The translations under genes and the position numbers were made by a program. The notes below the pieces were generated by a model. It had not been told where the DNA came from. It did not search any database and saw nothing but the letters and a program-made list of their open reading frames with translations. From Lepidodermella squamata (Eukaryota; Animalia; Gastrotricha), in NCBI GenBank assembly GCA_047495785.1, contig JBLDXI010000017.1, positions 3,596,001 to 3,660,000 on the forward strand: 64,000 nt of DNA, written 5' to 3'. Positions 6,694-59,147 of the stretch are shown here, piece by piece. Numbering within the stretch: position 1 is the stretch's first letter; every line of letters begins with the position of its first letter.

Positions 6694-9600
6694 ATGTCGA
6701 GCGATCGCACTAACATTCTTGTTGCTGCGAGGTAATGCATTTTGCCACCTTACGTGATTTGTTTCATAATTGTGTTTATCAGAGTGCGGCCTCTCAATGC
6801 GAAAGAAGGTACAGAACCTGCTCTACGTGTGACGCAGGGAGATCAAAGCAGTTCAATACACGTGGAGAAGTGTGGCATAAATAAGCAGTTCAATTTTGAT
6901 TTCGTCTTTGGTCCTGACTCAGAACAGCATGATGTGTTCAACGTTGTAATACCGCTCGTTGAGAGTATATTAGATGGATACAACGCTACTGTTCTTGCTT
7001 ACGGTAATACAACAATTTGTTAACATTGGTGCACAATTAATATTCATGTATTGCGGAAGGTCAAACTGGGAGCGGGAAAACTTTCACAATGGGAACAGAT
7101 GCTTTATCTCTTGCCGAGAATGGCGGCGCTGACGCTTTAAGTCGTCGTGGTGTCGTTTCTAGATCAACAGATCATTTATTTTCCATGATGGCAGGTTTGT
7201 TGCTCTTCAGTCGTATTTCGTATAGTTTAGTGCCGAATAATTATCAGAACGTCGTAGCCGAGCATTGGCTGCTGGCCAACCCGTTCCTGAGTTCTCCGTC
7301 TCGGTAGTTTTTGTGGAGATCTATAACGACGATGTCATCGATTTGTTAGCCGGCAAAGACAAAAACTGCCATCCTTCCGCTCAGAGCAATGGCACATCCA
7401 ACAATATTCCAGGATTAAAAAAATCTTCCACAGGTTTGATAGCGTTATATTCTTCTTTTCGCTCTTTTAATGTGGTGAACTTCAATCAAGTTGTAAAATC
7501 AAAAAATGTGCCTGCAAAGAAAGCTAATGTGCGATGCACTGAAAATGGAGATATTGTCCTCGATGGCATCACAACCGTCGCTTGCGATTCTTCTTCCTCG
7601 GTGTTATCGTGTTTACAAGAAGGATCGCTTGCCAGGCGAACAGCCACAACGGCTTACAACGAACGCTCAAGCCGCTCCCATGCAATTTTTACTATTGTGG
7701 TCAATCAGCATCGGTTTATTAAGCCAGCAAAGTCAAACAGCGGCGGGGGGAGTACCGAGCCGGAATCTGATGCACTAGACGATCTTACCGATGAGGTATT
7801 TTTACTAATTTCGACCATACTTTGAGATCACCCGATTTTACAGGTTTTGGTGGCTAAAATGCACTTCGTCGACTTGGCGGGGTCTGAAAGGCTACACGAT
7901 GCCATTGTATGCTCTGGTCAAGCAGCTCAAGAACGGTTTCGCGAAGGCGTCAACATCAACATGGGTTCGAATGGAGTGATACTTGATTGAAACCTTGGTC
8001 AATAGCAATTTTTGTTCACAGGGCTTTTGACTCTTGGCAAGGTTATCAGTTTGCTGAGTGAAGGAAAAACCATGTCTCAGTACGTACCGTATCGAGAATC
8101 TAAGCTCACAAGATTACTTCAGGTATTTTTCCTGCCTTGATTCCCTTCAAATATATTCATGTTGCGTTAATTTCTCACCTTCACAGGACTCTTTGGGTGG
8201 CAATAGGTATGTTTTCATTAATCATAATCTATTCCTTATTAATGTTTATATTTTCAGCCGAACTTTGATGATTGCCTGTGTTTCGGCAGCCGAGTGCTAC
8301 ATGGAACAAGTACCGAAAATAACTTTTATAATTATTTTATAATACCATTTTCTTATTTTCAGTCGATCAATACGCTGCAGGTCGGAGAGCTTGCTTTCAT
8401 CGCATGACAAAGTTATCCCATTTGATTATTTTTAGTATGCTACAAACGCCCGAAAAATAAAAAATCAAGCAGTTGTCAACAGGTTTGACTTCATTCTTGA
8501 TAAAAATTCGGTTGAATGTAGGATGATACTCTTAGAGCGTCATCGGTGGCACAACTTCGCGCCGAAATAAATATGCTGCGAAAACGTTTGGAGTCGCGCA
8601 ACGGAGGCGCTGACGTTGAGACGCTCGTCGAATTGGGTCGCCTCCGTCAGGAGAATGAAGAACTCCGATCTCAATTATCATTGCTGGTTAGCTATTGCCA
8701 TCTTGCCTTTCTTATCTTTATTAAAGCTACAAATTCAGGAGCGCGAAAAACACGAGCGAACAGTGCGTCTTCGAGAAAACTCAGCCCAGACAGAAGCGTT
8801 AGCGGATATTGTGTCTAAAGAAGCAGCGATTCTGGTAGCTTCTAAGCTTAGGGCAGCCAAGTCACCGGAAACCGGCGACTCGACGCTGACCGACAGCAAA
8901 CTAATCGCGACCAACAGTTTTCGGCATTTGTATGACAAAATTGTCTCGGAACAAGCTGAGATCATCGCACTCAAAGAGCAAATGCCTTCGAACGGAATTT
9001 TCTCCCCCAACCACTCAGCACGATTTTTGTCAGGAAATCCCGACATTGAGCGGGTACGTGAGCGGAGAAGAAAGCGTAATACCGAAATGTTACTATCTTC
9101 GAACAATAACTCTTTTCGCTCGAGCGGTATGAGCATGAACAGGTAGGCCAAAGTTTGCCCGATCGCCATGCAGTAATTTTTTTCCTAACAAGTGTATCCG
9201 AAAAATCGGATATGACGCCTCAACCGACAACGCGACCCGCCAACGGTGAATCCGGCGGAACCTGGGATGTCATAATGACTGTGAGCTCCATTGGGGCAGA
9301 AGACGAAGACGACGAATACCGCGACCCAACATACGAACCCACCCCTCTAAAACAGCACCCTAATACTCGAAATCGCCGGCGATTCGAATGCGTGGAAGAT
9401 GACAATGGCAATCGCCGGTTGACACGAGCTGCGAAGAACTACGATCCAGAGCCAATGTTTAGCAAGAAGAGCCGCATTGACGAAGAACCTGGTGACGAAA
9501 ACGACGCTCCAAACCGCGAATTCTGTCGGTGCCATGGACTGTGCAAAATTGCTCGTTGCGCATGTCGACGAAACGGCTTAACTTGTTATCATGGTGAACA

Positions 9601-14802: not shown

Positions 14803-17800
14803 ATGCGGGATACGTCGTTGGACAATTCGACCGACGACGAGGGCCGTGTATTTCTTGTGAAGGTCGAGCGCGGTGTGACGATCAAATCGTGCAAATCGCC
14901 CGAAAACAATGTGGTCATCAGCCGAATGGTCGCCAGCTTCACCGGGTCCCTGCCTTCCGATGACAGTGAAAACCAGTCGAATGGAAACCCAAGGCCAGCG
15001 CCGAGACAGCGCCGTCAGATTTTGGCAAACATCGGGCAACCGCCGAAAGCGAGTCGCGTCGCTTGGAGGCGGCGCGGAGTTGAATCGCGGTCGCTTGACC
15101 GTGGCGGCGACGGCAACCGGCTTGCACCAAGCGCCGGCGCCGCTTCAGACGACGAGCAAGAGTTCGAGCAGCTGGCGGCTGCGAACAAACGCGATGGAAG
15201 CGAGTGTAAATTCCGGTGAGTTTGCATGTTACTAATGAAACCCGGTATAGCTTGCGTGTGGAACCGATTTGGCGCCGCGGTGTTGTTATTTCGGCGACGG
15301 TAAACAGTTTGCGCATGTGTGCGGGTCGGTACAGGCAAACGTGTTATAGTTACCGAAGCTGTAATTTGTTCTCGGTTTGTTTACGTGTACGCGTTAATCG
15401 CGCTGTAAAATCTCCCAGCCGCCACACGTGGTGTTGCACGCGGCTGGCTACACCATTCGCAAGATTTCAGGCTCGTGTTGCGGCTGGTGCTGCACATCAT
15501 CTCACTACACTGATAATAATATCTTCTTCAGAGTGGATAATTCCACCGCCGCCTTAAGCTGCCTGCGGGACAAGTTGCTTTTAATCCATTCGAACGTGTC
15601 TGAACAACGTCTTATTTTTGGCGAAGGCTGATCGCCGGCTAACGTGCGAAAGACTTCATTACTTTTTCAGCGAACGATAGAATATACATGCGCTTAGCTT
15701 CAGGGCCGATACTGGGCGTTCATTCAGTTCATACCGTAATATAGATTGGGTTGGGTTTTCTTTAGTGTTTACGCATCAGCGTTATATCTGCTTTTTCAAT
15801 CTTCGCTATATGTGTCTGTTGATTGCATTTATTGTTGTGGCACGTTTTCTTCGTTGCAGTAAAACAGGAAATTATTCATTATTAACACGAGATAACACAC
15901 AGCGGCTGTTGGTTTTCGCTCACAGCAGTATTCATTATTTTATCGTTGGCTTTTCTGCCAGTTTGAAGCGTTTTCGCCGCGCTCACCTTTTTGTTTACGC
16001 GTTTTATGATGTTGACAAACATAACTAGTTGCCAAATGTTCGCACAGTAGCATTTCAGGGGTTTCTTACTAGTCTTCCACGGATAAATAAGAAATTTTCC
16101 ATTGCGTCTACCACTGCAATAATTTAATCCAGGTATTACTGTTTATCCGCTGTCTTTCCGCTGCGTTTCGCGGCAGCAAGTGCCTCAAATGTATTTAAAA
16201 TAGATTATTACCGTTTGCTGTAAATTTCTTATTACATAGTATTTTATTATCGTTTGACCCTCAACTGAGCAGCAGCAGCCGTTTATTACAACTGCGACAA
16301 CGTGTTAATGTCGCAAATGCTGGTTTTTAAACACATATATTACACACCTTATCTCTTAGCCCTCTTGAACCGTGATATATCCTGCGTTGTTTTATCATTT
16401 TCAAATTGCTCACATAACACGGCGGCTGCCGCTGATATTATACCTACCAAGTACCTGCGTTGTGATTCTACGTTTTTATTCGGTGATTCATGCGCTAATT
16501 AATTTGCCGGAGCTATGAAACCAGCTTAGAATTCCGTTGCTTTTTATTGAGGGGTGGAGGCTAGTTATTTTTTTCACCCCAGCCCAGTCAGTGCAGCAAA
16601 AAACAACTCGGAATTAGGGGGTGGTAAAAATCTAAGCCTGCATTAGCGATATTGCATTACCCTAATTCGATCAGTTTTTTGTTCATGAAATTTTTCGGAG
16701 TCAAGAATGAACTCAAAATGAGAGGACACTTTCTAGTGCCAATTTGCTGCGCTTTTTCGATGAAATCATCGAGTTTTATGTCGAGAGTGGCGTGGGAGCG
16801 TGTAAGACAATGAGGCACGTGCGTCTTTGAAAATAGCTTACCTGCTTCTTTTAGGGCTCTGTGTGACATACGTGGGCGTTTGGCCATGTGCCTCGTAATG
16901 AGCCTCTCATCTCGCCATGCCGGCCGGCGCTGGGCATGCGTTTTGCCGTGGGACGCACCCATTATTATGATATCACAAGCCGTTCGCCGACGGTCGGTAG
17001 CCGTCGTACACGTGATGGGACAAGCATATTGCCACCGTTTTCTAACGTACCTTGCTTGCCCCATTATTCGCCGCATTTGATTAGCTGGCCGAGCATTCAG
17101 CAATCTGTCTTTTAGCTATTATCTGCCATCTTTTATTCAGTACTTGATGCGTTGACGCGGGCGTCGCTGCTGCGTTCGGGCATTGATGCAACCCTGGCCG
17201 TGCAAAAACACGGCCCGTTGAAGCTCATCGCCAGCGACTTGTTCTTTGAAACGGCCGAAAATGGGCGCGCTTAGGAAGGCGATGACATGGCAAATAACAA
17301 GCGTCGCACGGCCAATTAATAGCGTACAAACATGGGCGGCCGTCTTGTGCACCTCGCCGCATCTATTTGTGTTTGCTTGTGCGTCGAGTAATGGTAGCTG
17401 ACGCTCAACTGCCAGCTCTTGTCATTTAGGTATATAGGGCTCGTAGTTTTTAGTGTCATCTCAATAACATCATGCGTTTGTAATACCGCTCATGTGCATT
17501 ATTACCCGCCATCCGCTAGTCCAGCCAGCGCGTTTTTTGTATTGGCAGTGCGACCCGCCTCACCTCGCCTTTGTCTTCGTTGTGTTTCATCATTATATCG
17601 CATATTCCCCTACTACTACTACTACATCATCCTACTCCGCCTTCTCGTCCTCCTACAGCTGCTGCGACTTTTTTCGGTCCGTTCGTCTAAAGCCGCGCAT
17701 TATTGCGCCTCTGATCCGCTATTATCACCCCGCCGTTCGCCGCGGCCGGTTATCTCTTTCTGTCACATCTGTGCCAACGCCGTCGGCCAAGCGCGACTGA

Positions 17801-20800
17801 GAGCTTGTCAACAGCAGGCCAGCCGTAGTCAACGCGTTCGCGCGATTCTACGTGCTTTTTTGCCTCTGCCGATGTGTGCACGACCGCGCTTTTTTAATGC
17901 GCGCGCATCTTCGAGTCGTGTGGCGTAGCCGAGCGCATCGCCGCCGCCTAAATCCTGCTTGACGTCGCATATGTTTTGGTGACAGTGTAGTGGGCAAACA
18001 ATCGCCGCGCGCCGGCAGTTTTCACCTATACCTTAGTTTTCGACGTGTCGACGCCATGTAATTGTTATTTTTCGATTTCTAGAGACGACAACTCTCGCCG
18101 CGAGTTTATTGAAAAGTTGCGCCATTTCGAGCGCTTGACGGTGCAGCAGCCAGCAGGCAAAGCCGAGTCCGCGGCCAACCCCGAACAATCAAAGCCGTTG
18201 GCGAACAATCAGCAAAATTCGTCGGCACCGCTAGCTCGCCGCCCACCGCCTCCTCCCCCCGCCGCCCCGCCTAAGCCGCCGTACCAGCCTCACCCCGAGA
18301 TCGAAAACCGCTTGCGCTTCTTCGACGCTGCTTTTGGCCGCCATCCAAGCATCCGCGATCGTCAACTCGAAAGTCTCACCAACCCGCCTTCAAACGACAC
18401 CATGTCAGCCTCAGCCGTGTCGATGCAGCCCCGGCTTTTACCCGGGTCAGGCCTTAGCACAGCCGATGACAGTGCCATCATTTATCCTAGTCGAAAGCCG
18501 CCATCTACTGATATCATGTCCTTCTCAATGACTGCAGGCACGTCGCCGGCTGGTAAAAGCCGCATCGACGTTCTGAACCGTATTTCAAACCAATTGCTGT
18601 TAAGCTCATCGAACCAACCTGCGCAAACTTCCACCGCACCGCAAACCTCCGAAAAACCACACCCACCCAGTCGGGTCAACTCGAGCCTGCAAGCCACAGA
18701 AGCTGAGTTGCGGCGCGAACTTGAGCATCTCGATTTGATGCTGAGCTCGATCAAGGACAACGCGTCGGGCGACGCCGCTGCAGCTGAGCCGACATCGCCG
18801 CTCGCTTCGATAGCGCGGGTTGGTTTTAGCATTAATTTTTAGCTTATTTGGCAGTAGTTGTTGCCAATTGCGGCGATCCGCTCTGCTAGGCTTATCGCTC
18901 CACGGTTTTTACAAAATTTCAACTACGCCTCATGCGCAAACACATACGCTTCGTTTCTTTATCGCCGTCTACTTGTTCGCTCCCCCGTTGTAGTAGTAAG
19001 AAAGCATTTCGCTAATAATACTAATAATAAGCCATTTCTTTATATCATAATTTATCGCGACCGCGTACTTGCTGTTTACACAACACTTTATTTCATCTCT
19101 CTGTTTGCATCATTATTATTCGTTTCCAATTCACAGGAGCGTCGCCACTCTGTTGCCACTGGTGCCATGTCGGCTGCTAATGGCGGATCGCGAATTCCCC
19201 GCATCCAGACCGTCACCATTGTGCCGCAGCTGTCTCGCTCCGTTGTCGTTCAGGGATCGCAAGTGGTCTTCGAAGCGCCGCGACTCGCGCCGGCCAACCT
19301 CCGGACAGAAATTCAAAATTTCCGAAAAACGCCTGCAGGCGAGTCATCGACCACCGTTACACCTGCAGTGGAAGAGGCCCCCCTCCAGCCGGCCTCTATC
19401 AATTCATCTGAAGTTACCAGTCATGCGGAATCCTCACAGAATGATGCTCAAGAACCGCCGAAAGTCAGAGAACGTTTCGGTAAGTTACCTAAATATGCCA
19501 TTTCGCTATCCCTAATCATTTTACTGATTGTTATAGAACCATCTCCTTCACCTGTTCGTGGGCTGCAAACCAATTCAGAAAGATCGTCTCCTCTCATATC
19601 AAGAGGAGATTTATCGCATTCGCCATCTCCATCGCCGCCGACAGTCGCTGGCGCTGTTAACAAGACAAGGCGAGTAGTCCTGGTTCCTCGGGCTAAACTG
19701 GTTACATCCGGATCTGTCGCGGCAGCTCAGCAATCATCCGGCCAGACTGATAGTCAAAAGTCCTCGCCTGTGCCCAGTCAAAACAGTCAAGATGACCAAG
19801 TTAGTCAAGCGAGTGGGCCATCAAAGCCGCCGGCTGAGTCTCGGGTTGAGCCCGATCCCAGCATGTTATCTCCATCGTCGTCCGCGTCTTCGACTCACGC
19901 CATGTCAGAGGTGAATAATCTTCCTCCGCCGCCGACGCCCTCGCCACCCTCGCGAGATAACGTATCATCAGACGCATCGACCCCGCCTCCGCCGGATGAC
20001 AAGGCGAAATTGCGAACAGAGATCGCCATCGAGGTGGCCCAGGACACCCCCATCGGCCCGCAGCAATCGATGACAATGCCTAATTCAAGCATTGTCATGA
20101 CGGCCGTGATGGAATCGAACGGGCATCACACCTACGATGTAGGTCAGCCGAGCCCGAGCCTCACGCCATCGACAACAAGTAACAGCGACAGCAACGGCGT
20201 GCTTGCCCCTGTAGCTCCGGTCACCAATTTCAGCCATCATCACCAGGCCGGTCAAATGACGGGGACGCACGCCGGCATTTCGTCGCCGATTATCACCTCG
20301 CACAAGCTGCACCAGCAGACGCTGCGTGACATCTCAACCCTGCGGCATTGCTTGATCGACATTGAGACGCAACAGCAGAATATTTTACAAGAAGTGTCTG
20401 CGTTGAGAGCCGAGGCTGCAGCCGTTAACGAGGTCGAATCCATCCGCGAGGCGATTCACGCCGCCGAGCTACGTTTCGAGTTGGAAAGAGAACGGGCAAA
20501 CGCTAGGCTAAATGCTGCTCGCAATAAGGCTCACGCGGCTGCTCGTGACGTTCAACATCTGGAACAGCAACGGCTGGTTGCTAATCCGACTGATAGTGGG
20601 GATCCATTGGATGATGAAAACGATGAAGCTACTTTAATGGAGGCTCACCAACAATTAGGTAAAAATACAATTTAAACCAGAATTCGTGTTTTTACAGTAT
20701 TTTTTTATTTAGCATCGCTGCAGGAAGACGTAGCTGATGCGGATTTTGAACTCGTGGAAGCCGAGACGCGTTTCGAGTCGGAAAGGGAGCGCCTGCTAGC

Positions 20801-21890
20801 TCGTCTCAGTGTAGCAACTGAGGCCGCCGTTAGTGCTTCGTTACTGGCGAAGAACGGCGGGGCTGCCGGGCTTATTGGCGGAAATTCCTCCTATGACTAC
20901 TGGATCCGCCGCCTGACCGAACATTACCGGCAGCTTGACGGTAAACGACAGCTGATCGAGCGTAACCTGTCCAAATTACAGGCCTCGTTTAATAACGGAA
21001 GTCCAGCATCGCTGTCAGCGCAAAACAACGGATCACTGAATAAAAGCAGCAGTGGTGAATGCTCACTTTCAATCGGTGGCAACTCTTCGAACAATGATAA
21101 GGATGCTTCAACACAGGAGAAACCCGGCGCCGAGTTTGACTCGAGCATGAATAAAAATATGACTGGGGATTCGAATTCATGCTCAGATGGTGCTCAGGCC
21201 GAGTCGGGGACGTCGTCTCGCCCCGTTTCTCTAGGCGAGGAACAGCATCAACTTCAACCGATTACTAAGCCCACTACCGCGATGAACCATGAAACTACAG
21301 TGAAGCTGCGTCCACACCCCAAGCAGGCCTCTAAAATACCGCCTTCTGACCGGCCCCGCACGCTGTTTCTTCCCCAGCCCGATAACGTCGCCCTCGATCT
21401 TCGTGAACACCTCGACGCCTTGTCTCACGATTGGCGATCTTGCAGCCATGTAACAATGTCAACTGACGGCTCGGCGTGTCGCGGTTGGTTACATAAAATG
21501 ACAAGCCGAGTGCCGGCGATAGTGCGGCAGTGGTCGCGACGCTGGTTCGTCTTTGATCGCCAGCTGCGCCAATTGCTGTATTTCTCAGAGAGTAACGAGC
21601 ATCATCCTCGAGGTCAAATCGCGTTCTCGGGCATCTTAGACGTCTATGTCGAAACTGCGGTGGCTGGCTCGTCGTCGTCTTCCGGGCTGCGGACTCATCG
21701 CCCGCCCAATTCGTGTTCGAACCTTTTAATCGTCGTGCAAACTGTAGATCGGCGGCTGATCCTCGCTGCCCCATCGCCTCAAGCTGCTCGCATATGGGTA
21801 GACGTACTGTGCACGGGTGCGGCTGGCAATCAGTCATACGACGCATCAACACCACCTGATGAGAGTTATGCCTTGGGTGCGAGAGCTTAA
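14803..21890 (+). CDS. PHLDB: Pleckstrin homology-like domain family B (LL5/PHLDB) protein, about 1260 aa (exons 14803-15215, 18083-18818, 19137-19479, 19537-20658, 20713-21890)
   Basis: C-terminal LDLREHLDALSH...CRGWLHKM...WSRRWFVFDRQLRQLLYF...RGQIAFSGILDVYV...APSPQAARIWVDVLCTGA is the PHLDB-type PH domain. Coiled coil DFELVEAETRFESERE. Splice phases are consistent; the first exon is the least certain. Confidence 0.85.
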
Positions 21891-37936: not shown

Positions 37937-39074
37937 TCACAGACGCTTGCTCTTCTCGGCAGCTTTTTCGTAGATCATCGAGGTGAACGGGCCCTCGAAT
38001 CGAAGTGCTACCTGATACCAGAAGAAAACCCATACGGTACAAGCTAATCCGATCCAGCTTTTAGACCTGAAAAACGTAATATTATGGGTTTTCAAAGGCG
38101 TTAGCCGCGCAAATAAAACTAACAAGAGACTGTAGCCGCAGAAAATCATGGTCGATCCAACATACCTGGCGAAGTAGAACAATGAAGTAGCATGCTTCAA
38201 AATTCAGTGAAAAAGAAAATTAATCGAACTTGAATGAATTCTTCCTAAATTCAATGAAAAAACTGCGGCTAAACTCAAGAAAACAATTAATTTTCGTCCG
38301 ATTTGAACCTAATGACGCGATTTGAACCGCCAGCTCTAACCAAACCCCAAAGACCCTGAATTTTACCTACATGGTCCTTCGCAAGCGCTACCTTTCCCTT
38401 TGAATTGAACCCTAATTTAGTTACAGTTACAGTTAGTTATGCTTTTAGTTACAGCTTGGTTTAGTTACAGCTAGCAGAATGTTTCGAGTGGAAACCAAAG
38501 AAAAAGAATACATACATTGGGTCGTTAACAACATTGAAAGGGAAAGATTCGACTTTCTCCTTCATCAAGATGCCGAAATAGTCACCGAGGTAAGTTCCAA
38601 CGACGCCAAGTTTATACATTGAGGTAAGGACGAATGTTGCACCAACAGCGATGAGAGCGTATCCCACTGGTGGAAGGAAGGCGATGCCTGACAGTAATTT
38701 GCTTGGCGAATGAGATTCCATTGCAGTATGGAAGCTGAATAAAAGTTGAACCGCACTTTGCTTGTATTCTGCAGTAATGGCGGAAAACTTACAGGTAGTC
38801 CCTGAAGGAAGAACCGCTAAAGATAGTTAATGCCAACACGTAAACGGCACGGCGAGCATTACCACAACCGAAAAGATAGGTCAAAGCTTTAGTATAATAC
38901 TCCAAACGCGCTGTTAACAGATGCTCATTTCAGGAAATGAAGGTGCATTTTGAAATAAAACGAACCGACCGTATTCCAGAAAATTGGCATGAACATGACA
39001 GCAGCGAACATTCTGAGCACAGCCGGGTGCTGCCAATCAATTTTCGTTATCTCCTCAACGACTTGTTGATACAT
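37937..39074 (-). CDS. PEMT: Phosphatidylethanolamine N-methyltransferase (PEMT/Opi3 type)
   Basis: FMPIFWNT|VARLEY, LTSMYKLGVVGTYLGDYFGILMKEKVESFPFNVVNDPM|YVGSTM, YQVALRFEGPFTSMIY. Five GT-AG introns. Confidence 0.95.
38417..38472. repeat. Degenerate short tandem repeat (TTAGTTACAG/GTTACA units) in the enlarged PEMT intron
   Basis: ttagttacagttacagttagttatgcttttagttacagcttggtttagttacagct. Confidence 0.55.
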
Positions 39075-40164
39075 TTCTGAGGTTTACTATTAGATAAATA
39101 TACTGATAACAGACGTAAAAATTAACAGCTGAACATCAATTTGTGGCGATTTGAGTTTATTTGCATGACAAGCAAAAAACAGCTGGCTGCTAATGCTAGT
39201 TTTTTTCAGCATGGCACGAGCTAGTAGTTGTTTTTTGTATTGATAGTGTAGCTACACTACCCTCGAAACAGCTAATCAGCATTCACGTTTTTTTGGTCCC
39301 TGTCGTTATCACAAAAAGCCGAGCCCTCGGAGTGCAAAACGCCAATTTTTATTTGAGATTGATGGTAAAAGCAATAATTATTACTTTTCGTTTTTTATCA
39401 TTATTATTTCAATCAATCATCCTGCAAACAAGAAAAATCAGCATCGGATGAGTGAATCCGGCCAGATCTCAGAATAAATAAGAGATATAGAATATGGAAA
39501 CGGTTGGTCCAATTTTGTATTATCTCAACAATGATAATTTCGCATAGTAAAGAGAGTAATAAAATGAGATCGAGTTGCGCTGCGACGCGCGGCATTTCCA
39601 GCCATTCGTCACAACTTTCAATGTTAAAGGTATCACAATTAAGAGGTGGTGATGCACACCCACGCATTCAACGGAGTCGGCTGGCCGTGTCGTGAGTAGA
39701 TAGGCTTGTGAGAAGATCAACGCGGTGGAAAATATAGTAGCAATTGTACCGTTCACACAGAGGGTGAGATGTGCGAGCCTGATGAGATGCCTTTCAGAGA
39801 TCAGCGAGTATAAAATGAATAGTAACGTCGAGGATGAGGAGTTTCAAAGCCGAAGGAAAACTAGCAGGTATCAAAAACGCCGAATAAGAAACTGGCACGC
39901 AGCATCACATAATCATCATGGTAATCTATAATTAACAATAGCAAGCCAACTAATGTTCAATAGCAACAGAAGAACCTCAAAATTGACAGCAAATTTGCGT
40001 TCGAAACGGCTATTAGTCATGAGCGCCGCGGAAGAAAAGTAGTCGGTAGTAAAAAGTAAAATGGAATGTTTGACCTTTTTGTTACCGTGGCAATGAGAAA
40101 ATCAACCACAAAATAGCTAAATTTCTTATCGATCGGAAGGTAAAAATTAGACGGTGCACAGTGT

Positions 40165-43100
40165 TTACAACTCGCCCCAGTCGTTCGACGGCGGCGGTGC
40201 GGGTCGTGAGGTGCTACTCGAGTACCGACTACTCGACGGCTGGTACAAACTGGACGAAGGCGTCGAGTACAACGACTGCGTTACCGGCATGCAGTACGCC
40301 GAGCTAGACGACTGACTCGGTTGCTGGCTAGAATACCGTGAGGCGCCGACAAGTGGCGACGGGCGCATGTAGCTATTCGGCGGCGCAATTTGCGACGAAA
40401 CTGGCAGAGGCGCCGGCCTGATACTGGTCGGCGCCGACGGTTGAGTTCGCGAAGTGCCGATCACGCTGGTGTAGTGACTGCTCGGTTGGGCGGTAAGTCT
40501 GTCACCGTCATTCGCTGGCCGGGATCGGGATGAAACTTCGCTGAGGCGGACACTGCCCGGCGAACTGGTCAGCGACGAGCCCCCGGTAGAAACAGCGTAA
40601 GAACTCGTCCGCTGCGCCGGCGGCTGTTCATTCAGCGGCATCAATAAACTTTGATAGCCCTCAGCAGCAGCCTTGTGCAGGTTAGCACTCCGCGCCGCTC
40701 GTTCCGACGTCACATTCGAGGAAACAAGTGGAACGAGGTCTCCCAGTGCCCTGTTGCTAGCCGAGGGTTGTGTCGACTGGCGCAACGAACGAGGGCTCTC
40801 GTAGCCGCTAGCTACCGAGATCGCGAGCTGTTCGTGCCGGCTTGGCGGTTGTTGACTAGGCCGGCTGATTGGAGCAGCCGGGCGTGAAGACTGAGGTGCA
40901 GTCGTGCCCGCCGCACGATTCGACTGCTGCGGAACTGGGCTACTACTACTGCCGTGTGTTGAAGACTCGAGAAGAGGTGTCACTCGGTTGTCATTGCCAG
41001 ACATCGCAGACTCGCTGCGTTTCGTCAGCTCCACCATCGAGCAGCGCAGCAAACGGTGGTACTCGCAAAGCTGGCTCGGCTTCATCAGCGGAACCGGCGG
41101 TCGCGGCGACGTTCCGCTGACGATTGACGCGGCCGCAGCTGCGGCGTGCGCCGCCAGGTCGATGTTGGTGAGCGAAGGTACGCGATTCGTAACGGCGTCA
41201 GTGCCTGCGTCGACTAGGGCCAGCGTTTCGTCGGCAGACAGCAGGTTGAGTTCGCGCTCGCGTTCGATGCGGAACGCCTCGATCATAAGATCGCGATCGG
41301 CCTGCATGTTGTACATGGGGCCCTTGCGGCGCGCCTTCAGTTTCGGCGATGTCGTGTTCAAGTTCTGCTTCGGCACGTCAAGATTAACGGGGGTCGGCGA
41401 CTGAGCTTGGGCTGTAAGACTCGGCTGACTGCCAGCGTTGTCCTCGGCTGGTGGCAACGGATGGCCGAGCAGTTGCATCAACCGACGCCGGCTTTGTGGG
41501 CTCAATTTCGAGCTTAGGACCTCACGAGCATTCGACGCCAAGTTGACTGGCGGGAGTGGCGGCGGTAGAGGTACCTCGATTTTTCGCGGTTGCCGGCGAG
41601 GCTTGGGCGGCTCGATTGGTTCGACCGGAGCCGGAGCAGCCGGGACGTCGGTCATGGTACCAGCCGAGCTCGTTGCAGCAAGTGCCTCTTTCACAATCTT
41701 CTCCGCATCGTAGCCCTCAGCAAATCCTGGAGGCGGAGGTGGCAACGGCGGTGGAGAAGCCGATGTCCTATCGAAGAAAAAAATTAAATAAATTCGAAAC
41801 CCTAATTTAATAAACCTCATACCCAGTTTCTCGGCACTCTTTATCCTGTGACGTCAAAACATTCGTTTTCTGAGACTCGATTGGTTTGGTGGGCTGTAAT
41901 AGCAAACAGAAATATTAGTTAAAATTCATTCAAAGCTGCAAAAAGGCACTTACCGATTGCAGTTCGGCTGATTCTGAGGGTTGTTCTTGAACGAACGCCG
42001 CACGGCTATCCAAGCTGCGAGCGCGGCGAGGAGGCCGTCGCTGTTCAAACGACTCGAGCAGTTCAGCTACGCGCCGGCGTTGTTGTTCGATAATTTCCTC
42101 CGGAACGTCAGTTTGAACCGCCATGCTCGACCAGGCAGTGGCGGAATCGGGCGTGCCTAGCGGCAGGCGGATCTCGCCAGCCTGGACCAGGCGCAGCGCC
42201 TCTTCTACGAGTTCAGTTTGTACAGCCGTAGTTGCCCACAAACTAGACGTGTAGCCCCCAGATGCAGGTGAAGACCGGCGGCTGTCGCGATGCTGGGCAC
42301 GGAGAGCAGATTCAGGAATGGGTGAAACACCCTGGCTACTGATACCAGCTCCATAGCCAGGCGAAGTGGCGTACTCGCGGGTACTCCGTCGAGTTGGCTG
42401 GCTTTCTTCCGCGCTCGAAGTGTTGATAGACAGCGGCAGTTGAACATCGACCGGGTCTGTATCAGCCGATTCTGAAACGTGGCGGCGAGTCGGAAGCCGC
42501 TTGGCAGAAGTCAAGCCAAAATCGACGCTACCAGTTGCAGAGGCTTCAGCACCCGCCGTCGCAGCAGCCGGATGTTCGACGAATACGAACGTGATTGAGT
42601 CTTCGGACGGCGCGTGGCCAACGTTGGGCGACTCATCGCGGCGCCGTCGGTCGTCCTGGCTGCGAGCGCGTCGATGCAGCTCGCTAATGTGCTCATCACC
42701 CGGCGCCGCCTCAGCAGCTGACGCGCTTGAGGAGGATTGACGCCGAGCCCTCGCGCGCTCGTGATGCCGCACCGCTTCGTCAGACTGGGCGTGTTCGCTA
42801 GGTGGCGGTTCGGTTCCGGTCGCGTATTGCTGGTAGAAACGAAGCAGGACGTCTTCCGGCCAGCCAGGGACTTGCCCTGCCGATTGCTGCCAGAACCGCG
42901 GGCTGTCCGAGGTACCCAGACTCACGTCACACGCAGGTGTACCTTTGCCTTCTCTCAGCGAACTACTGCGAGCCCGATCAGGATCCGGATCGGTGCTTGC
43001 ATCGACCAAACTACGGCCGAATCTAGCGTCCCATAGGCGTTGCATGTCCTCATCGATACCGGAGGCTTGGTTAACTTTAGTTGTTTCGTCAGTACCAGTT

Positions 43101-52100: not shown

Positions 52101-55100
52101 TTGGCGCCTGGCGATTGTTTAAATTGACGATACGAAGGTTTACCGCGCCGATTAGGATCAGCGGATTTATCCAAGCCGCCGAGTGACGTTGAATGTTGAC
52201 CTATCGCAATAGGGTAGCTAGCATTTTCCGCATTTGGCGTCGGAGATGTCATTGGAAGCATGAATTGTTGTTCAGAAGTAGCTCGAGTCGCAAGCGAGCT
52301 CTGAGGCGGCATCTGACCCTGGGGTCGCGGACGAGATGTCATACGGAAGTGATGCACTGGTCGACTAGCTATATCACTTTCTGACCCAACCCGTGGGTCG
52401 GTGGACTGACTGCGGCGAGACTGTGACTTCGGAGGGAGACCAGAAGCTTCGTGAGTTGCTTTCGGTTCAGATGGCTGTATTTTAACCGCTGCTGATTGAG
52501 CTGTTGGTAATACGATTGTGTAAGTTTCACCGCCGATGGGAACCTCCATTTCCAGTTCTTTACCGAATGAAGTTTTCACATATGTTGGTGATCTTGGTGA
52601 TCTCACAATAATAGGCTCTTCTTCAGTGGTTGGCGAGGTTATCACGGTCAGCGGCGCATTCGGGTCACGTAGCGGACTTGGTTCTTGAGCACGGACGTCT
52701 CCCCAACCCGAGGTTCCCTTGCAAACATCCAAAACTGACTCCGCTGTTGACGTCAAATCAACACTACGATCAAGCACCACCAAAACAGCAGGTCGCGATG
52801 CCAGAGCTTCGCCGGTGAGGCCACTTGAACTCTGCTGGGGTTGCGAGGTGGTCGAAGCTGGGTTTTGGCGGCGTGCATATTCAAGCGATACCTCAAATTC
52901 GTTTTGATCGTTAGTTTCCAGGGCAGTCAAAACAGATCGACAGAGTCGGAGTAGAGTTTCATCGGTCGACGTTTGACTAGCCGCGGGTTTTTCTGGCGCC
53001 GACATCTGCGCACGGAAATTCATTTGCGCTGCGTCATCGCCAGTGAGCGAGGCGAGACGAAGCGGGGGCACCAGTGATGGGTCACGGTCTTCGCTGGACG
53101 AACGTCGCAAGTCCGCTAAAGAATCGCTCGGCAGACGAGATGAGCCGCTAGTAGAATGGCTCGTCCGTGACTGCGGGCGCTGGTCGGATGTCCGCGTGTC
53201 TTGGCTGCGAATTCGACTAGATACAGGCAGGGCCGAGCCGACAGGTACGGGCGGGGTGGCGCCGGAATGGCGGCTCGCAGCGCTGTGAACTGCATCGTCC
53301 TCGTCAGCGTCGTCGACGAACGCAATCGACATAGCAACAGCAGAACCGGGTTGATGTTGCGATGGACTGAACGACGACGACGTAGCCGACTCTGCGGTGC
53401 TAACTCGGACGCTAAGTCGGTTTTGACAGCTGCAGTCGGTGGCACTCGCAGAACAAGTACAAGTACCAACGCATGAGGTACAGTAGGTGCACGATGCGCA
53501 GGACGTGCAGCTGCAGGAAGTTCCGCGGCGGCTTGACGAAGTTATCGTAGCCGGTTGGATGCTCAAGCCAGGCAAATCACCGGCTGACGATTGGCGCCGG
53601 CTTATCACTGTCGAGGCTGAGCCGCTGCTACTACGACGCTGCGGGCTGGTGATTGCAGCTTCTTCGAGAGGCGGCGCCTGGCGCTGCCGGGGAGATATTG
53701 ACGCCACCGCAGCGGCGACCATGTCATCCAGCAACGCCGTATGGGAACGCTCCTGGGCCGCGGTCACGGAAGCGTAGGGCGGCGGGTGGTGGCGGTCTTC
53801 CGAAATTGATGAAGCGATGGAAGACGGTGCCTTAGCGGCGCGCATAATGAGGTCGTTGTTGCGGCGAGGTAACTGATCGGTGCTTGGCAATGACGGAATG
53901 TCGACATGCGGCGGCGAAGTGGCACATTGTTGCACGGTGTGTCTCAACTCTGGCGAAGCGTTTGCCGAAGCGTGCCGTCCGGTGAATGAACCCTCATCGC
54001 TGAGCCGTTCGTCCGACTCGCCCGCAGAGTTGACATGCAGTGGAATGTAGGGCGGCAAGCCTCGTGTTCCTGCTATTTGAATACCGGACAACTGCGGCGA
54101 GGCTGTTGTAGACCAGGCTGTCGAGGGTGGGGTCGAAGAGGTCATGTCGAGTGAGTACGGCGACAACGACGCTGATGATGAAGGCGGCTCGGGTGGCGCC
54201 GCTGATTTTGATTGAGGGTGCTCACGCTGTAGCGTACTTTCGATTTGCTCCAAATCGATAACGAGGTTCTGATTTTCGGCACTTGCATTCGCCATTTCGG
54301 AAGCACTGTAAAGCCGCGGGGCCGACTGACTCGTCGGTAGCGGTACTGTGAGAGAGAAAACGCCGAATCGAGGCGCCCTTTTCTTAGCACTAGCTGCCCC
54401 ACCCCGACCACGTTTCCGCACCGCTGCGACTGCTGGTTTACTCGCGGCTACGTCATCAGCCGCGCCGGGTGACTCGCTGTCCTCGAAGCTCTGTTGATGC
54501 GAGCGCGGCCGTTTCCCGGCAGCTGTCGATGACGGAGCGCCGCGCCCACGCCGCGAGCCTGACGTAGCTGGTAGCAGTATTGCACCTGAGGAAGTCATAG
54601 ATTCGCCTGGCTCCGATGTAACAGAAGACCTGACAGCACTGGCGCCCCTACCAACTTCACCTTCCAATCTAGCAGTCGGCGCCGTTGCCGCGCTGGATGC
54701 CGGCCGAGTCGCAGATCGAGTGCGTTGAGGTTGTTCATACGCCGGCAGCATCACTGCTCGCCGTTCGGGCCGTTTCGGCGCTTGCTGAGGCCGACAGCAC
54801 TCGCAGGATTCTTCGGCGGCTGGGGTTCGGCGACCCACGGGGCCACCACTAGGTGCGTGGCTGGGCATGGCGGGTAGCAAAACTGCGTGTTGCGACGAGG
54901 GAAGAGGCGAAACCGGTTGAGGAACGGGTGAAACTGGCGGGAAATTGCGAAGCGAGCGGGCGAAAATGATGTGAGCCATGTCAGGCGGTTCGGTGGATCC
55001 ATCGGCTTGCGTTCTCCGGCCAACACCACCCGCTCCACCTCCACCGCCGCCGCCACCCCCGCCACCACCAGGGTAGTGGTGTTGCGGCGGAGCACCGCCA

Positions 55101-56403
55101 GCCATGAATGGACGAGGTGGAGGAGAAGGTGCAGATTTTTGAGCGAGAGGTTGTCGCTGTGCCGATGATCGGCCTGAACTAGTCCGGGCAAGGTTGAGCG
55201 GCTCAGCAGGCGTAGCGGCGATCGGTACAGTAGGTAAATTGGAGTCACACGGTGACCCGGACGACCTGCATGACGCAAAATGCGCACGAGGTCGTTGTTG
55301 CATTATTTCTGCAGCGGCTTCTAGGTCCTCAGCGACTTCTTGAAGAATGTCGATAAACGAACACGAGAAACACGTGCACGCCGATGATACAAGCAACGAG
55401 TGGCGGTGCTTGCAGACGGGCTCGGCCGATTGCTGCTGCTGCTGCTGCTGCGCCGATTCTTGACTGTCAAAGTCATGCAACGACCCACAGCTTCGCGTTC
55501 GGCGCAAGTTCTGACCAGTCAGGTAGGCGTGTCGGCGATGAGCGGCACGGCGTCGCAACTGGCTTACCGAGGGTGTTGGAAAACGCGATGAAATGCTTGA
55601 CACCACACGGGCAGCGTGAAGCCAAGCTAGCGGAGCTGGGATTTCTGAAACAACACAACCGGAACGTCATTTCACTATATAAAAGGCTAAGAATTAGCTA
55701 GAAGCAAATACTGACACATTTTGCACGTAGAATTTCAATGTGAAAATGTATGACAGGTATAGTGAATATATAATAATACCTACTCCTGCTTCATTGCATG
55801 GAGGGGGAGAAAATCGAAAAACGTGAATCATTATTAATATTCACAACCTGCCAACTACGGCGGTCAACACTACGCCCTATATTTTTCAAATAAAACTAGA
55901 TATTATCAAAAAATTCATAATAACGCACTCCCAAGGGATATTGCCAGCGAATTTAACTCATTCATATTGTCTCACTCCCAAATTCAAACTAGGTTATTTC
56001 TACTATTTGTACCTTTGTCAACAAATGAAGTTGAACCGGTGGCTTCCGCTAGATTGAGGCCGGTGTCGAGCAACGATGCGGTGTCTCGTTCCTCGGGGCT
56101 ACCAGGTGTGAAAAGTAGCTGCGATGATTCCGAGTTCCGGGTTTTCGAGAAACCGAGCCTGAAAAAAGCAAATCATATATTATATTTTTTGGCGAATTGA
56201 GCATATTTAAAAGTTGAATCATAGAATTAAATGTATTGAATGAAATTAAAATTCGAGCTGAAAGAGGAAATCACACTCGAGATGTAGTAGCTACCAACTA
56301 ACCCGACGACCGACCCGACACTGCCATACAGCGTTAAGTATGGCCCGATGCGGGTCGAGGGCGGTACGTTATTGCGACAACACGACGAAAGCTGGCAACC
56401 CAT
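40165..56403 (-). CDS. Giant Ser/Pro/Arg-rich disordered protein or STARD9-like kinesin tail (exons 56403-56303, 56158-56013, 55644-41954, 41893-41823, 41767-40165; about 5200 aa)
   Basis: The 4558-aa stop-free ORF is bounded by acceptor tttcag|55644 and donor 41954|gtaagt. It splices in frame through a 71-nt exon to the terminal exon ending NDWGEL*, and the upstream 146-nt exon also joins in frame. It lies directly downstream of a STARD9-type motor+FHA, matching the giant-exon layout of STARD9. Confidence 0.85.
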
Positions 56404-59147
56404 GGTGCTTAGTAGCACTCAAAAAGTCGGTGGAGATGGATTCGATGGGCACCTCATGGTTCGGCACGACGCCAAGGTCGGCCTCGCCGAAATCATTCGG
56501 GTGACGAGCAAAACACCACCATCAGCGGCGCATTCTCGTTTTAATATTATTAAATGTTAACGGTAGTAACTATATTAATTCTTCATTAAATGAAAAATAG
56601 GTAGGTAACAAGTCGCCGGGTCGATTTTCAGCCGAGAGAAAGTACGTGTGTGTGATTGACGGCAAAGACGGCCCCGTTAAAAGGCTACTTGAGCGAAACA
56701 AATGAAAGAAAAGCAAAGCCACGAGCCAAAAATGCCTCGAGCCACAAGAAGGGATAACGATCGGCAACAGACATATATAGAGAGCTAAGCGCGACTGAGC
56801 ACTTTAAAGCGAAATTGCAGTAGATAAAGTTAAGGCACAAGTTAGGCATTGAAATATTTAATAGCAGCAAAGATCAGCTATTGACAAGCGATATAGAGCG
56901 ACGTCGATGAGTCGTGAATGTAGGCCGGTCGATGAGCCTACCGTGCCAAGTAGTGATGATGAGCCACTTGCGCCTGTCAATGGCTAGGCAAAAACGGGAG
57001 AGTTATTCGCTCATCACGCAACTATAATTTGCAAAACACCGCTGCGTTTCGCCTAACCAGATGTATTCACGCGAAATTACGGCACAGTTAGCGCGCCCCG
57101 CGTCAATGAAACGCCGCAAAAACTGAGAAAACGCGCCAGTGTTGCTTCCAAGAATAAGCATACTTCACTTGACACAAAAACCGCACGAAAACTCGGTTTG
57201 TGTAATTAAAAAAGAAAACGAATGAAAACAGACGCTGCTGCAGTGAGGGCAAGTTCTTATCTTAATGTTTATAAATTACGAGAACGAGTCAGTGAATGAT
57301 GCGCCCACCAAATCGAATGCTTGTGCCCGGCAACGCGTCAAAACGGGGGCGCAATTTCACGCGAGCGCGCGCGTGCACCAGCCGATAAAAAGCGCTTCAG
57401 GCGTAACGGCCGCGCAAAAACAACTTGTCGTCAAGTGCTCGACATTGAGACGACGAAGACTTGTGCATCGGTGCTTGTTGGCCAAAAGTCAAGCACGTCA
57501 TGTCACTCGCTGTGGCTTGATCGGCCTTGATTAAAAAAGGCGCGTTAAAACAGGGGAAATGGCAGTGGACCGTAAACACCGTCAATTGACGAGAATTTCT
57601 CGGCGCGCATTGACGCTCGGGTCGAATTAATTACACCTGTATGGCGCGCGTATAGTAATTAAAACCGGCTGGTGAGAGAGGGGGTGGATTGGAATGGTGG
57701 CGATGAGCACTAACCCGTATAAATATTTTTGCAAGGCCGGTTTCGCGAGCAAAGTGTGAAAACAAGGGTGCGATGAACGCGGCCTCGCGTCTCGAGTGCG
57801 CCGCCGAATCGACGCGGATAATTGTAGTCAAACAGGTAAGAAAAGCGGCGGGTGTGGTTCTTTAGTTCAACTAGATAAATTACGCATATATATCGGTGAC
57901 CATAAGATGAATATTCAGGCAACTGCGATGCTTTTGCTACGAATTTTAAATGACACGATGATGAATGGGCAGGTAGGGCCGCATGCGCGAATCAGCGGCG
58001 GCTGCATCAAGCGCGTGCGCGGAAGTAACTGAGAACGCAAAACAAAGTGACAGCGTGCGCAAAAACAGCCAAGACAACATAAGTGTTTGAGGAGAGAGCA
58101 AACACAAACAAGCAAAATGTAAATAGCAGATCGATTTTTCGCAGCAATTTCTGCGCCCGATCAGCGCGCTATTAGACAAGCGCGTGAAATAATGTCTCAA
58201 AAAGCGGCGCTCGCGGTGTCTCTCGTGCGCTTTCACCTGCGCGTGTTTTGGCGCGCCGTTTGAACAGGCGCATTAATTTTGCAATAACGTCTTGTTATTG
58301 AGTTTCGCTATGATTATCGGCACAATATTCTGGCATCTAATAAGTAAAACATGTCGCATGCGAGTAGGCAATACACCTCGAATGGCACTTGTTGCCGTCG
58401 GGCGGGTGCATTCATCGGAAAAATCATTACAGCGCGAATCACGCTGACCAAGTCGATCGGGCAAGCGGCGCAAAAATACGACTAGCTCGACATCAGCCGC
58501 GCGCCTGTGATTAGTCGCCCGTCGAGTACACAATGGCCTAATACTATTATGCTCAAATCAACGTATCGCCTCGCGCCCCGAGTTGTTTTGTAAAATAAAA
58601 AAGAAAGCGCTGCAAAATAGGCAAAACTGCATTCGAGTCCAACACGGCGGCGACCTTCTTGTTTATTTATGAGCAAGCTAGGCTCGCCACACTCAAGCTT
58701 GCCGTTCTAGCTATTCGATAAAAAATCATGTCTTCCGAGATTTCGTTCAAGCTTTTCCGGTCACGCGTAAACACGAATTTAGTAATAGGTAGAGGCATAT
58801 ATAGTAAAAACATTTTAGCAAAAGATGTCCGCGGCAAACCTTTGTTGAGAATTTCCTGTCGAGCGACCGCAGATAACGTTGAGCGACTGGGTCGAGGCGA
58901 AAGGCGACGAGGCCGGTACGTCTTCGGCAAGTGGCGACGATGCGTAGGCAGCAAACTGGCGATTGAATCGGCTGCGAGTCGGCCCGAGAAAGGCAGCGGC
59001 CGAGTCAAGCGAGAGGGTTGATACGGAAGAAACGGACGATAAGTTTGCGCAACTCTGCAGGAAAAACAACCGGTTAGAGCGAGCGATAATGGCAAACATT
59101 TTAATTAGCCTAGAAAATTACGGTTCTACCGAGACGATATAACGCAC

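Follow-up and report, generated by a model that had tools for sequence, protein, structure and literature searches.

A candidate alternative first exon for a motor-less, lipid-anchored form of a giant STARD9-type kinesin gene

The minus strand of the 64,000-nt window (i.e., the whole stretch of DNA that was analysed) carries a giant kinesin gene whose 5′ end lies beyond the window and whose recognizable parts are collected in Table 1. The kinesin-3 motor exons are followed by FHA exons, an assignment made by tblastn with the scallop orthologue, residues 511-629 of which (its FHA region) match at 61039-59127, and then by a linker exon, from which a long intron leads to a short exon, termed here the shared exon, that can be entered from two different upstream exons. 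A further intron of 368 nt separates the shared exon from the giant exon, an open frame of 4,558 aa that is rich in S, A, P and R, has no Pfam domain and constitutes a very long disordered region. The first-pass annotation of this DNA had placed the candidate first exon described below between the FHA exons and the giant exon; to this context we add, as a correction, that the linker exon comes after the FHA exons.

Table 1. Features of the giant kinesin gene on the minus strand of the window, in the order in which the gene is read (a slash marks an exon edge, here and in the text)
Feature	Position	Strand	Basis or remark
Kinesin-3 motor exons	about 63802-62292	(-)	Pfam Kinesin match, E 3e-33
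FHA exons	about 61340-59127	(-)	tblastn with the scallop orthologue
Linker exon after the FHA exons, 215 nt	59054-58840	(-)	ends in phase 2, CAAAG/GTTTGC; donor of the kinesin form
Long intron (kinesin form), 2,681 nt	56159-58839	(-)	encloses the MGC exon; presumed site of its promoter
Stretch of higher GC content before the MGC-exon ATG	56404-56535	(-)	GC profile; putative 5′ UTR and core promoter
Stop codon TGA in frame with the MGC-exon ATG, 15 nt before it	56419-56421	(-)	
MGC exon, candidate alternative first coding exon, 101 nt	56303-56403	(-)	read directly; 33 codons and 2 nt; MGCQLSSCCRNNVPPSTRIGPYLTLYGSVGSVVG
Short AT-rich intron from MGC exon to shared exon, 144 nt	56159-56302	(-)	28% GC
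Shared exon, 146 nt	56013-56158	(-)	reachable from the linker exon or the MGC exon; conserved ES(S/Q)QLLF
Giant exon, 13,691 nt, about 4,563 codons	41954-55644	(-)	S/A/P/R-rich; without Pfam domain
Last small exon(s) and terminal S/P-rich ORF	40168-41893	(-)	stop near 40168; without START domain

Exons of a phosphatidylethanolamine N-methyltransferase (PEMT) homologue (38464-39083 on the minus strand; Pfam PF04191, E 5e-18) lie directly downstream of the giant gene. On the opposite strand, the window holds a second kinesin motor-like coding region (6766-8122), which was matched by tblastn with a scallop STARD9-like protein at 27-30% identity, as well as a GC-rich stretch (18045-21890; 53% GC) with three consecutive long ORFs of 265, 605 and 378 aa that may represent a single-exon gene or a mobile element.

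The best full-length matches to the motor are giant STARD9-type proteins from molluscs, echinoderms and fish, which are named STARD9 or KIF16B-like, are nearly all 4,000-6,500 aa long and have their motor at the N-terminus. Like STARD9 (KIF16A), the gene specifies an N-terminal kinesin-3 motor, then FHA and a very long serine-rich disordered region; unlike STARD9, which ends in a C-terminal START domain, neither this gene nor the mollusc orthologues tested were found to possess one. START was detected in echinoderm orthologues and in none of those from oyster or scallop. In the window, neither the giant nor the terminal ORFs gave any Pfam match (though a START domain split over very small exons could escape such a search), and the ORFs downstream of the giant gene belong to the PEMT gene. 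The tail, when compared with the tails of mollusc and echinoderm orthologues, yielded no BLAST match at E 1e-3. Because no START domain was found, the name STARD9, under which the locus had initially been annotated, is appropriate for the motor, the FHA region and the presence of a giant disordered tail only, and this tail bears no BLAST similarity to those of the orthologues. Mammalian StARD9 is a lysosomal kinesin, and the paper describing it makes no mention of StARD9 isoforms (PMC10203878).

The long intron of the kinesin form contains the segment with which we are mainly concerned, termed here the MGC exon after the first three residues of its peptide. Its ATG (56403-56401) stands in the context agcaccATGg and, because of the in-frame TGA at 56421-56419, is the first possible start in its frame; the peptide opens MGCQLSSCCR, and the exon ends in phase 2 at the donor GG/GTTAGT (56303), of a type (GTTAGT) that is also found elsewhere in the same gene. 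Nothing else in the window repeats this exon. The short intron that follows it leads to the acceptor ttttttcag/G of the shared exon, and the frame that joins the MGC exon, the shared exon (56158-56013) and the giant exon (from 55644) is free of stops and specifies a protein of ~5,200 residues. The first-pass annotation had reported a strong-Kozak ATG at 56403 between the FHA exons and the giant exon with a stop just upstream, a donor at 56303 in phase with the downstream exons, and a tail of about 5,200 aa; direct reading of the start, stop and donor, together with the joined frames, bore out each of these points. Because the linker exon also ends in phase 2, the kinesin exons can skip the MGC exon without loss of frame.

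The GC-richer stretch upstream of the ATG would be the putative 5′ UTR and core promoter of the MGC form, as judged from its composition and position. Four ATGs (at about 56533, 56524, 56496 and 56456) lie within 130 nt of the MGC start and, should the 5′ UTR include them, would act as upstream ORFs and hamper translation from 56403.

An ATG followed by a usable donor can arise by chance in an intron of this size. The 2,681-nt intron contains eight ATGs whose ORFs hold an in-phase GT, only one of which, that at 56403, has a donor of the form GTNAGT or GTRAG, and composition-preserving block-wise shuffles yield 0.66 ATG-ORFs per intron that have an in-phase donor of this strength. Requiring the N-myristoylation pattern as well reduces the expectation to 0.008 per intron, a post hoc criterion that was chosen after the peptide was known. 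A codon-usage log-likelihood, trained on the giant exon versus the introns of the same gene, gave the MGC exon an intermediate score, in the top 2% of intron windows and in the bottom 2% of giant-exon windows. With 0.66 chance candidates per intron and an intermediate codon score, the window alone does not settle the status of the MGC exon, and both values would be in keeping with a chance ORF that overlies conserved non-coding sequence, for example an enhancer or a splicing element. What settles the matter is conservation in a second species.

The 113-aa motor exon, used as query in an exhaustive HMMER search, led to this relative: P0001, from ENA metagenome assemblies, is 89% identical to the query, and all other matches are at most 67% identical. 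Four contigs (L001-L004) carry the relative's copy of the gene, two of which, L001 and L002, reach into the tail. All statements about the MGC exon that follow come from one related species, i.e., from a single comparison, and the gene on L001 could in principle be a paralogue.

A tblastn search with the 33-aa peptide matched L001:17222-17314 with 68% identity over 31 aa from the Met, and the corresponding exon (17222-17319) sits between the homologue of the linker exon and the tail, the same place that it occupies in the window. It starts ATG GGT TGT CAA CTG TCG TCG TGT TGT CGC, which again reads MGCQLSSCCR, the ten residues being identical with three synonymous changes among their codons. 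The L001 exon is 98 nt long, is preceded by an in-frame TGA (at -21 to -19 relative to its ATG) and ends in phase 2 at GG/GTAAGC; the intron after it, 99 nt and 26% GC, runs GTAAGC...TTTTCAG to the acceptor TTTTCAG/A. A search for the same exon in related species had been proposed at the outset as a check, and in this relative the exon is present with its MGC residues intact.

The two exons differ at 35 of 96 bases, with 8, 7 and 20 of the differences at first, second and third codon positions, respectively, and eleven codons differ synonymously only; pS is 0.79 (saturated) versus a pN of 0.23. At the peptide level, 21 of 32 residues are identical, as opposed to 12.2 ± 1.9 in permutations that scattered an equal number of changes at random, none of 200,000 of which reached 21. 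The conserved residues fall into two blocks, MGCQLSSCCR[ND]N and RI[GR]PYL[TA]LYGS, and the five residues between them are wholly different. When the interval from the linker exon to 56158 was compared by blastn and tblastx, the MGC exon was the sole conserved island in 2.3-2.7 kb, with similarity that starts within 3 nt of its ATG and stops at its donor. Its peptide, at 68% identity to L001, is better conserved than the shared exon, at 48%, and the start of the giant exon, at 53% (56% over the N-terminal 400 aa). Moreover, the motor introns have been lost from L001, together with the one after 56158, such that the homologue of the shared exon is fused to the giant exon, yet it keeps the short intron after the MGC exon.

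A non-coding element beneath a chance ORF does not account for this pattern: 20 of the 35 differences would not be expected to gather at third codon positions, nor eleven codons to change synonymously only, nor the frame, start, upstream stop and donor phase all to be kept, nor the permutation test to return no case in 200,000, and we consider such an element very improbable. Because of the coding-type substitutions, the sole conserved island, the retained intron, and the conserved start and donor phase, the MGC exon is very probably coding and translated in its frame. The comparison supports a real protein-coding unit under purifying selection, whose ATG starts a conserved coding block; this onset of conservation and the in-frame stops upstream lend indirect support to the Met as the translation start.

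Outside the MGC exon, several further features of the two copies were observed. The motor region is a single uninterrupted ORF in L001 (10001-10927) and is broken by at least four short introns in the window (63802-62978), a case of marked intron gain or loss between two species with an 89%-identical motor exon. At the start of the giant exon (54443-55642 on the minus strand of the window; L001:17534-18733), conserved blocks (PLAWLHAARVVSS, CFSCSF.DILQEVAEDLEAAA, SLRNFPPVSPVP, KRPERRAVMLPAYE and SGAILLPATS) are separated by diverged low-complexity sequence, and a poly-Gly run is kept in both species; the tail probably has short linear motifs or small folded units at these blocks. Upstream of the MGC exon, the 8-mer TGATGGTG occurs at -121 in the window (about 56520-56527) and at -119 in L001 (about 17103-17110), where the probability of such shared placement by chance is roughly 0.08; it overlaps one of the upstream ATGs and may, as a weak suggestion, mark a conserved upstream-ORF start or an element of the promoter or UTR.

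A coding exon at this position need not be a first exon. It could instead be a cassette or poison exon of the kinesin mRNA, with an acceptor located before the ATG: the window offers a weak AAG/ (56410-56408), four bases upstream of the ATG, which would let the phase-2 linker read on in frame as ...S-T-M-G-C..., as well as an AG at 56419-56418, which would give a premature stop. An AAG, however, makes a poor acceptor, and the in-frame option is not conserved, L001 being without any AG in the interval from the in-frame stop to the ATG; the conserved stretch opens at the ATG rather than upstream of it, and a poison exon would not be expected to experience purifying selection at the amino-acid level. 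Because there is no AG between its stop and its ATG, the exon in L001 cannot be an in-frame internal exon. On the absence of this acceptor the cassette reading was rejected, and we retain for it, and for a poison exon, only the slightest probability.

Whether a first exon at 56403 serves a second form of the kinesin gene or a gene of its own depends on the linker exon. The counterpart of this exon in L001 (14848-15074) ends CAAAG/GTATGT, also in phase 2, and similarity between the species ends exactly at the GT of the donor; read-through past the donor is unrelated in the two, running RFAADIFC and then a stop in the window as opposed to RYVLL and then a stop in L001. Splicing to 56158 is open in frame from the linker exon and from the MGC exon in both species, and because the linker donor and phase 2 are conserved, one tail is accessible to both a kinesin form and an MGC form. 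The initial claim that the MGC exon is in phase with the shared downstream exon thus stands for L001 as well as for the window.

These same observations bear on the possibility that the locus is split, with the kinesin-FHA gene ending a few codons past 58840, the tail belonging to a separate gene that always starts at the MGC exon, and no motor-carrying giant protein being made. Consistent with a split, read-through from the linker stops after 8 codons in the window and after 5 in L001, a spacer of 2.3-2.7 kb is large for genes this compact and has been kept by the intron-poor relative, and the tail shows no BLAST similarity to the tails of mollusc and echinoderm orthologues. The read-through codons are not conserved, however, whereas CAAAG/GT is conserved exactly where similarity ends; the phase of the linker equals that of the MGC exon in both species and joins 56158 in frame; the best full-length matches to the motor, almost all of 4,000-6,500 aa, display the same layout of a head and a giant tail; and it would be a coincidence for an unrelated giant gene to lie downstream in the same orientation and phase. 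The conserved phase-2 donor of the linker favours an alternative isoform over a split gene, and, because of this donor and its phase and because of the layout of the motor's relatives, one gene with two 5′ ends is the reading that we favour; a split gene we regard as unlikely.

The one sequencing run that holds the region (n = 1) consists of DNA contigs from another haplotype, in which the introns are covered and no joints occur. This haplotype has two synonymous SNPs in the shared exon (56122 and 56140); its MGC exon is free of SNPs, which is uninformative at an expectation of 0.6.

On balance, the segment 56403-56303 is somewhat more probably than otherwise a genuine and selectively maintained alternative first coding exon of a motor-less, lipid-anchored form of the gene, an assessment that is derived from the sequences of the two species. 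Under this proposal, an internal promoter within the 2,681-nt intron would give rise to an mRNA that starts at the MGC exon, which would be spliced from its donor (GG/GT at 56303) to exon 56158 and produce a motor-less protein of about 5,200 aa; this protein would have in common with the kinesin form everything from exon 56158 onward. In the kinesin form, the linker donor after 58840 would be joined directly to 56158, with the MGC exon skipped.

The lipid anchor is proposed from the resemblance of the N-terminus to known acylation motifs. Proteins of the G-alpha-i/o/z class and several Src-family kinases are myristoylated on Gly2 and then palmitoylated on Cys3, and Met-Gly-Cys-x-x-Ser accompanied by further cysteines is the form used by G-alpha-i/o/z and by Lck/Fyn-type proteins. 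In the window and in L001, the initiator Met is directly followed by Gly2 (ATG GGT), position 6 is Ser, and Cys3, Cys8 and Cys9 are present and invariant. The peptides of both species match the regular expression for N-myristoylation substrates, G-{EDRKHPFYW}-x(2)-[STAGCN]-{P}, which we take to be PROSITE PS00008. An MGCxxS signal with nearby cysteines had been recognized in the first-pass annotation; the pattern match and the conservation of all three cysteines now extend this to two species. By analogy with the established enzymology, the MGC N-terminus is predicted to be dually acylated: Met1 would be removed, N-myristoyltransferase would acylate Gly2, and DHHC palmitoyltransferases would then acylate Cys3 and probably Cys8/9, which together would give the long disordered tail a stable attachment to a membrane.

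The peptide might, however, be translated from ATG 56403 and yet not be lipidated, or not dually so, its conservation then reflecting a binding or sorting motif such as YL[TA]L. The myristoylation pattern is short and permissive, and acylation does not involve the second conserved block, RIxPYLxLYGS, both of which agree with such an interpretation. Set against them are the match of Met-Gly-Cys-x-x-Ser and the extra cysteines to the form seen in G-alpha-i/o/z and Lck/Fyn-type proteins, and the invariance of the ten N-terminal residues despite saturated synonymous sites, and we consider this alternative improbable.

The shared exon (56060-56130 on the minus strand of the window; L001:17432-17500) is otherwise poorly conserved and retains the core ES(S/Q)QLLF. 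Within it, ES(S/Q)QLL fits the acidic dileucine signal [DE]xxxL[LI], and YL[TA]L of the MGC exon fits YxxPhi, both amid diverged flanks. The two would be compatible with an endolysosomal destination, the compartment in which mammalian StARD9 operates (PMC10203878); we attach little weight to this because such motifs arise easily by chance.

Returning to the dually acylated form, its joint existence with the kinesin form would amount to a motor-or-anchor switch, in which the same scaffold of ~5,200 residues is fitted either with a kinesin-3 and FHA head or with a G-alpha-i-type anchor. One scaffold would then exist both as a form transported along microtubules and as a form held at a membrane, and the anchored form, perhaps endolysosomal, might tether the partners of the motor form or compete for them. 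We put this switch forward tentatively, as a possibility that falls short of an even chance.

We searched for counterparts of the MGC exon more widely. In the oyster orthologue locus (L005), there was no tblastn match to the MGC peptide and no ATGGGNTGY on the gene strand. A relative search based on P0001 returned none closer than 63%, and a profile of two conserved tail blocks found no relative in JGI metagenomes. A degenerate DNA pattern for MGCQLSSCCR was without match in metagenome contigs and prokaryotic genome contigs, and a look-alike search of the ESM Atlas with the 33-aa peptide gave no usable match. Because the oyster locus is without an MGC-type exon, the exon appears, as far as can be seen, to be specific to this lineage.

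Several known systems share parts of this arrangement. The opening MGCQLSS resembles both MGCTLSA, the N-terminus of G-alpha-i/o, and MGCRQSS, that of G-alpha-z, and with these proteins and the Src-family kinases (Lck, Fyn, Lyn) the peptide has in common Met-Gly-Cys as the first three residues and Ser as the sixth. Outside this motif the sequences are unrelated; in the MGC form it heads a disordered tail of ~5,200 residues rather than a GTPase or kinase and is followed by Cys8, Cys9 and the RIxPYLxLYGS block. MARCKS, BASP1 and AKAP12/gravin are N-myristoylated disordered scaffolds, and as such resemble the predicted product in combining a long, mostly disordered polypeptide with an N-terminal acyl group at the membrane, but they are unrelated in sequence, far smaller, and not isoforms of motor genes. 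In function, the closest analogue is headless myosin-X (Hdl-Myo10), a natural isoform that arises from an internal start of a motor gene and keeps the tail without the motor (PMC6345916, PMC5725431); it localises to the plasma membrane and does not perform the motor's task (PMC6345916). This form differs in belonging to a myosin rather than a kinesin, in binding membranes via domains of the shared tail rather than a lipidated first exon, and in having been shown experimentally, whereas the MGC form of the kinesin gene is deduced from sequence.

In the literature, we found no paper on a lipid-anchored or natural motor-less isoform of STARD9 or of a kinesin, and the kinesins called "motorless" there are, to go by titles and abstracts, apparently engineered constructs. 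The arrangement proposed here combines known kinds of element, namely an alternative first exon, a headless motor isoform and an SH4-type anchor, in an exon swap that we did not find described for any kinesin.

If both forms are made, a single swap of first exons turns a transported scaffold into a membrane-fixed one. If the split-gene reading alone is true, the locus would represent the fission of a giant motor gene, with the tail gaining a lipid anchor. To our knowledge, little is understood of what the huge disordered tail does in STARD9-type kinesins, and the candidate form, if true, would provide a handle on this question: a natural version that is motor-less and membrane-anchored suggests that the tail acts at the membrane on its own.
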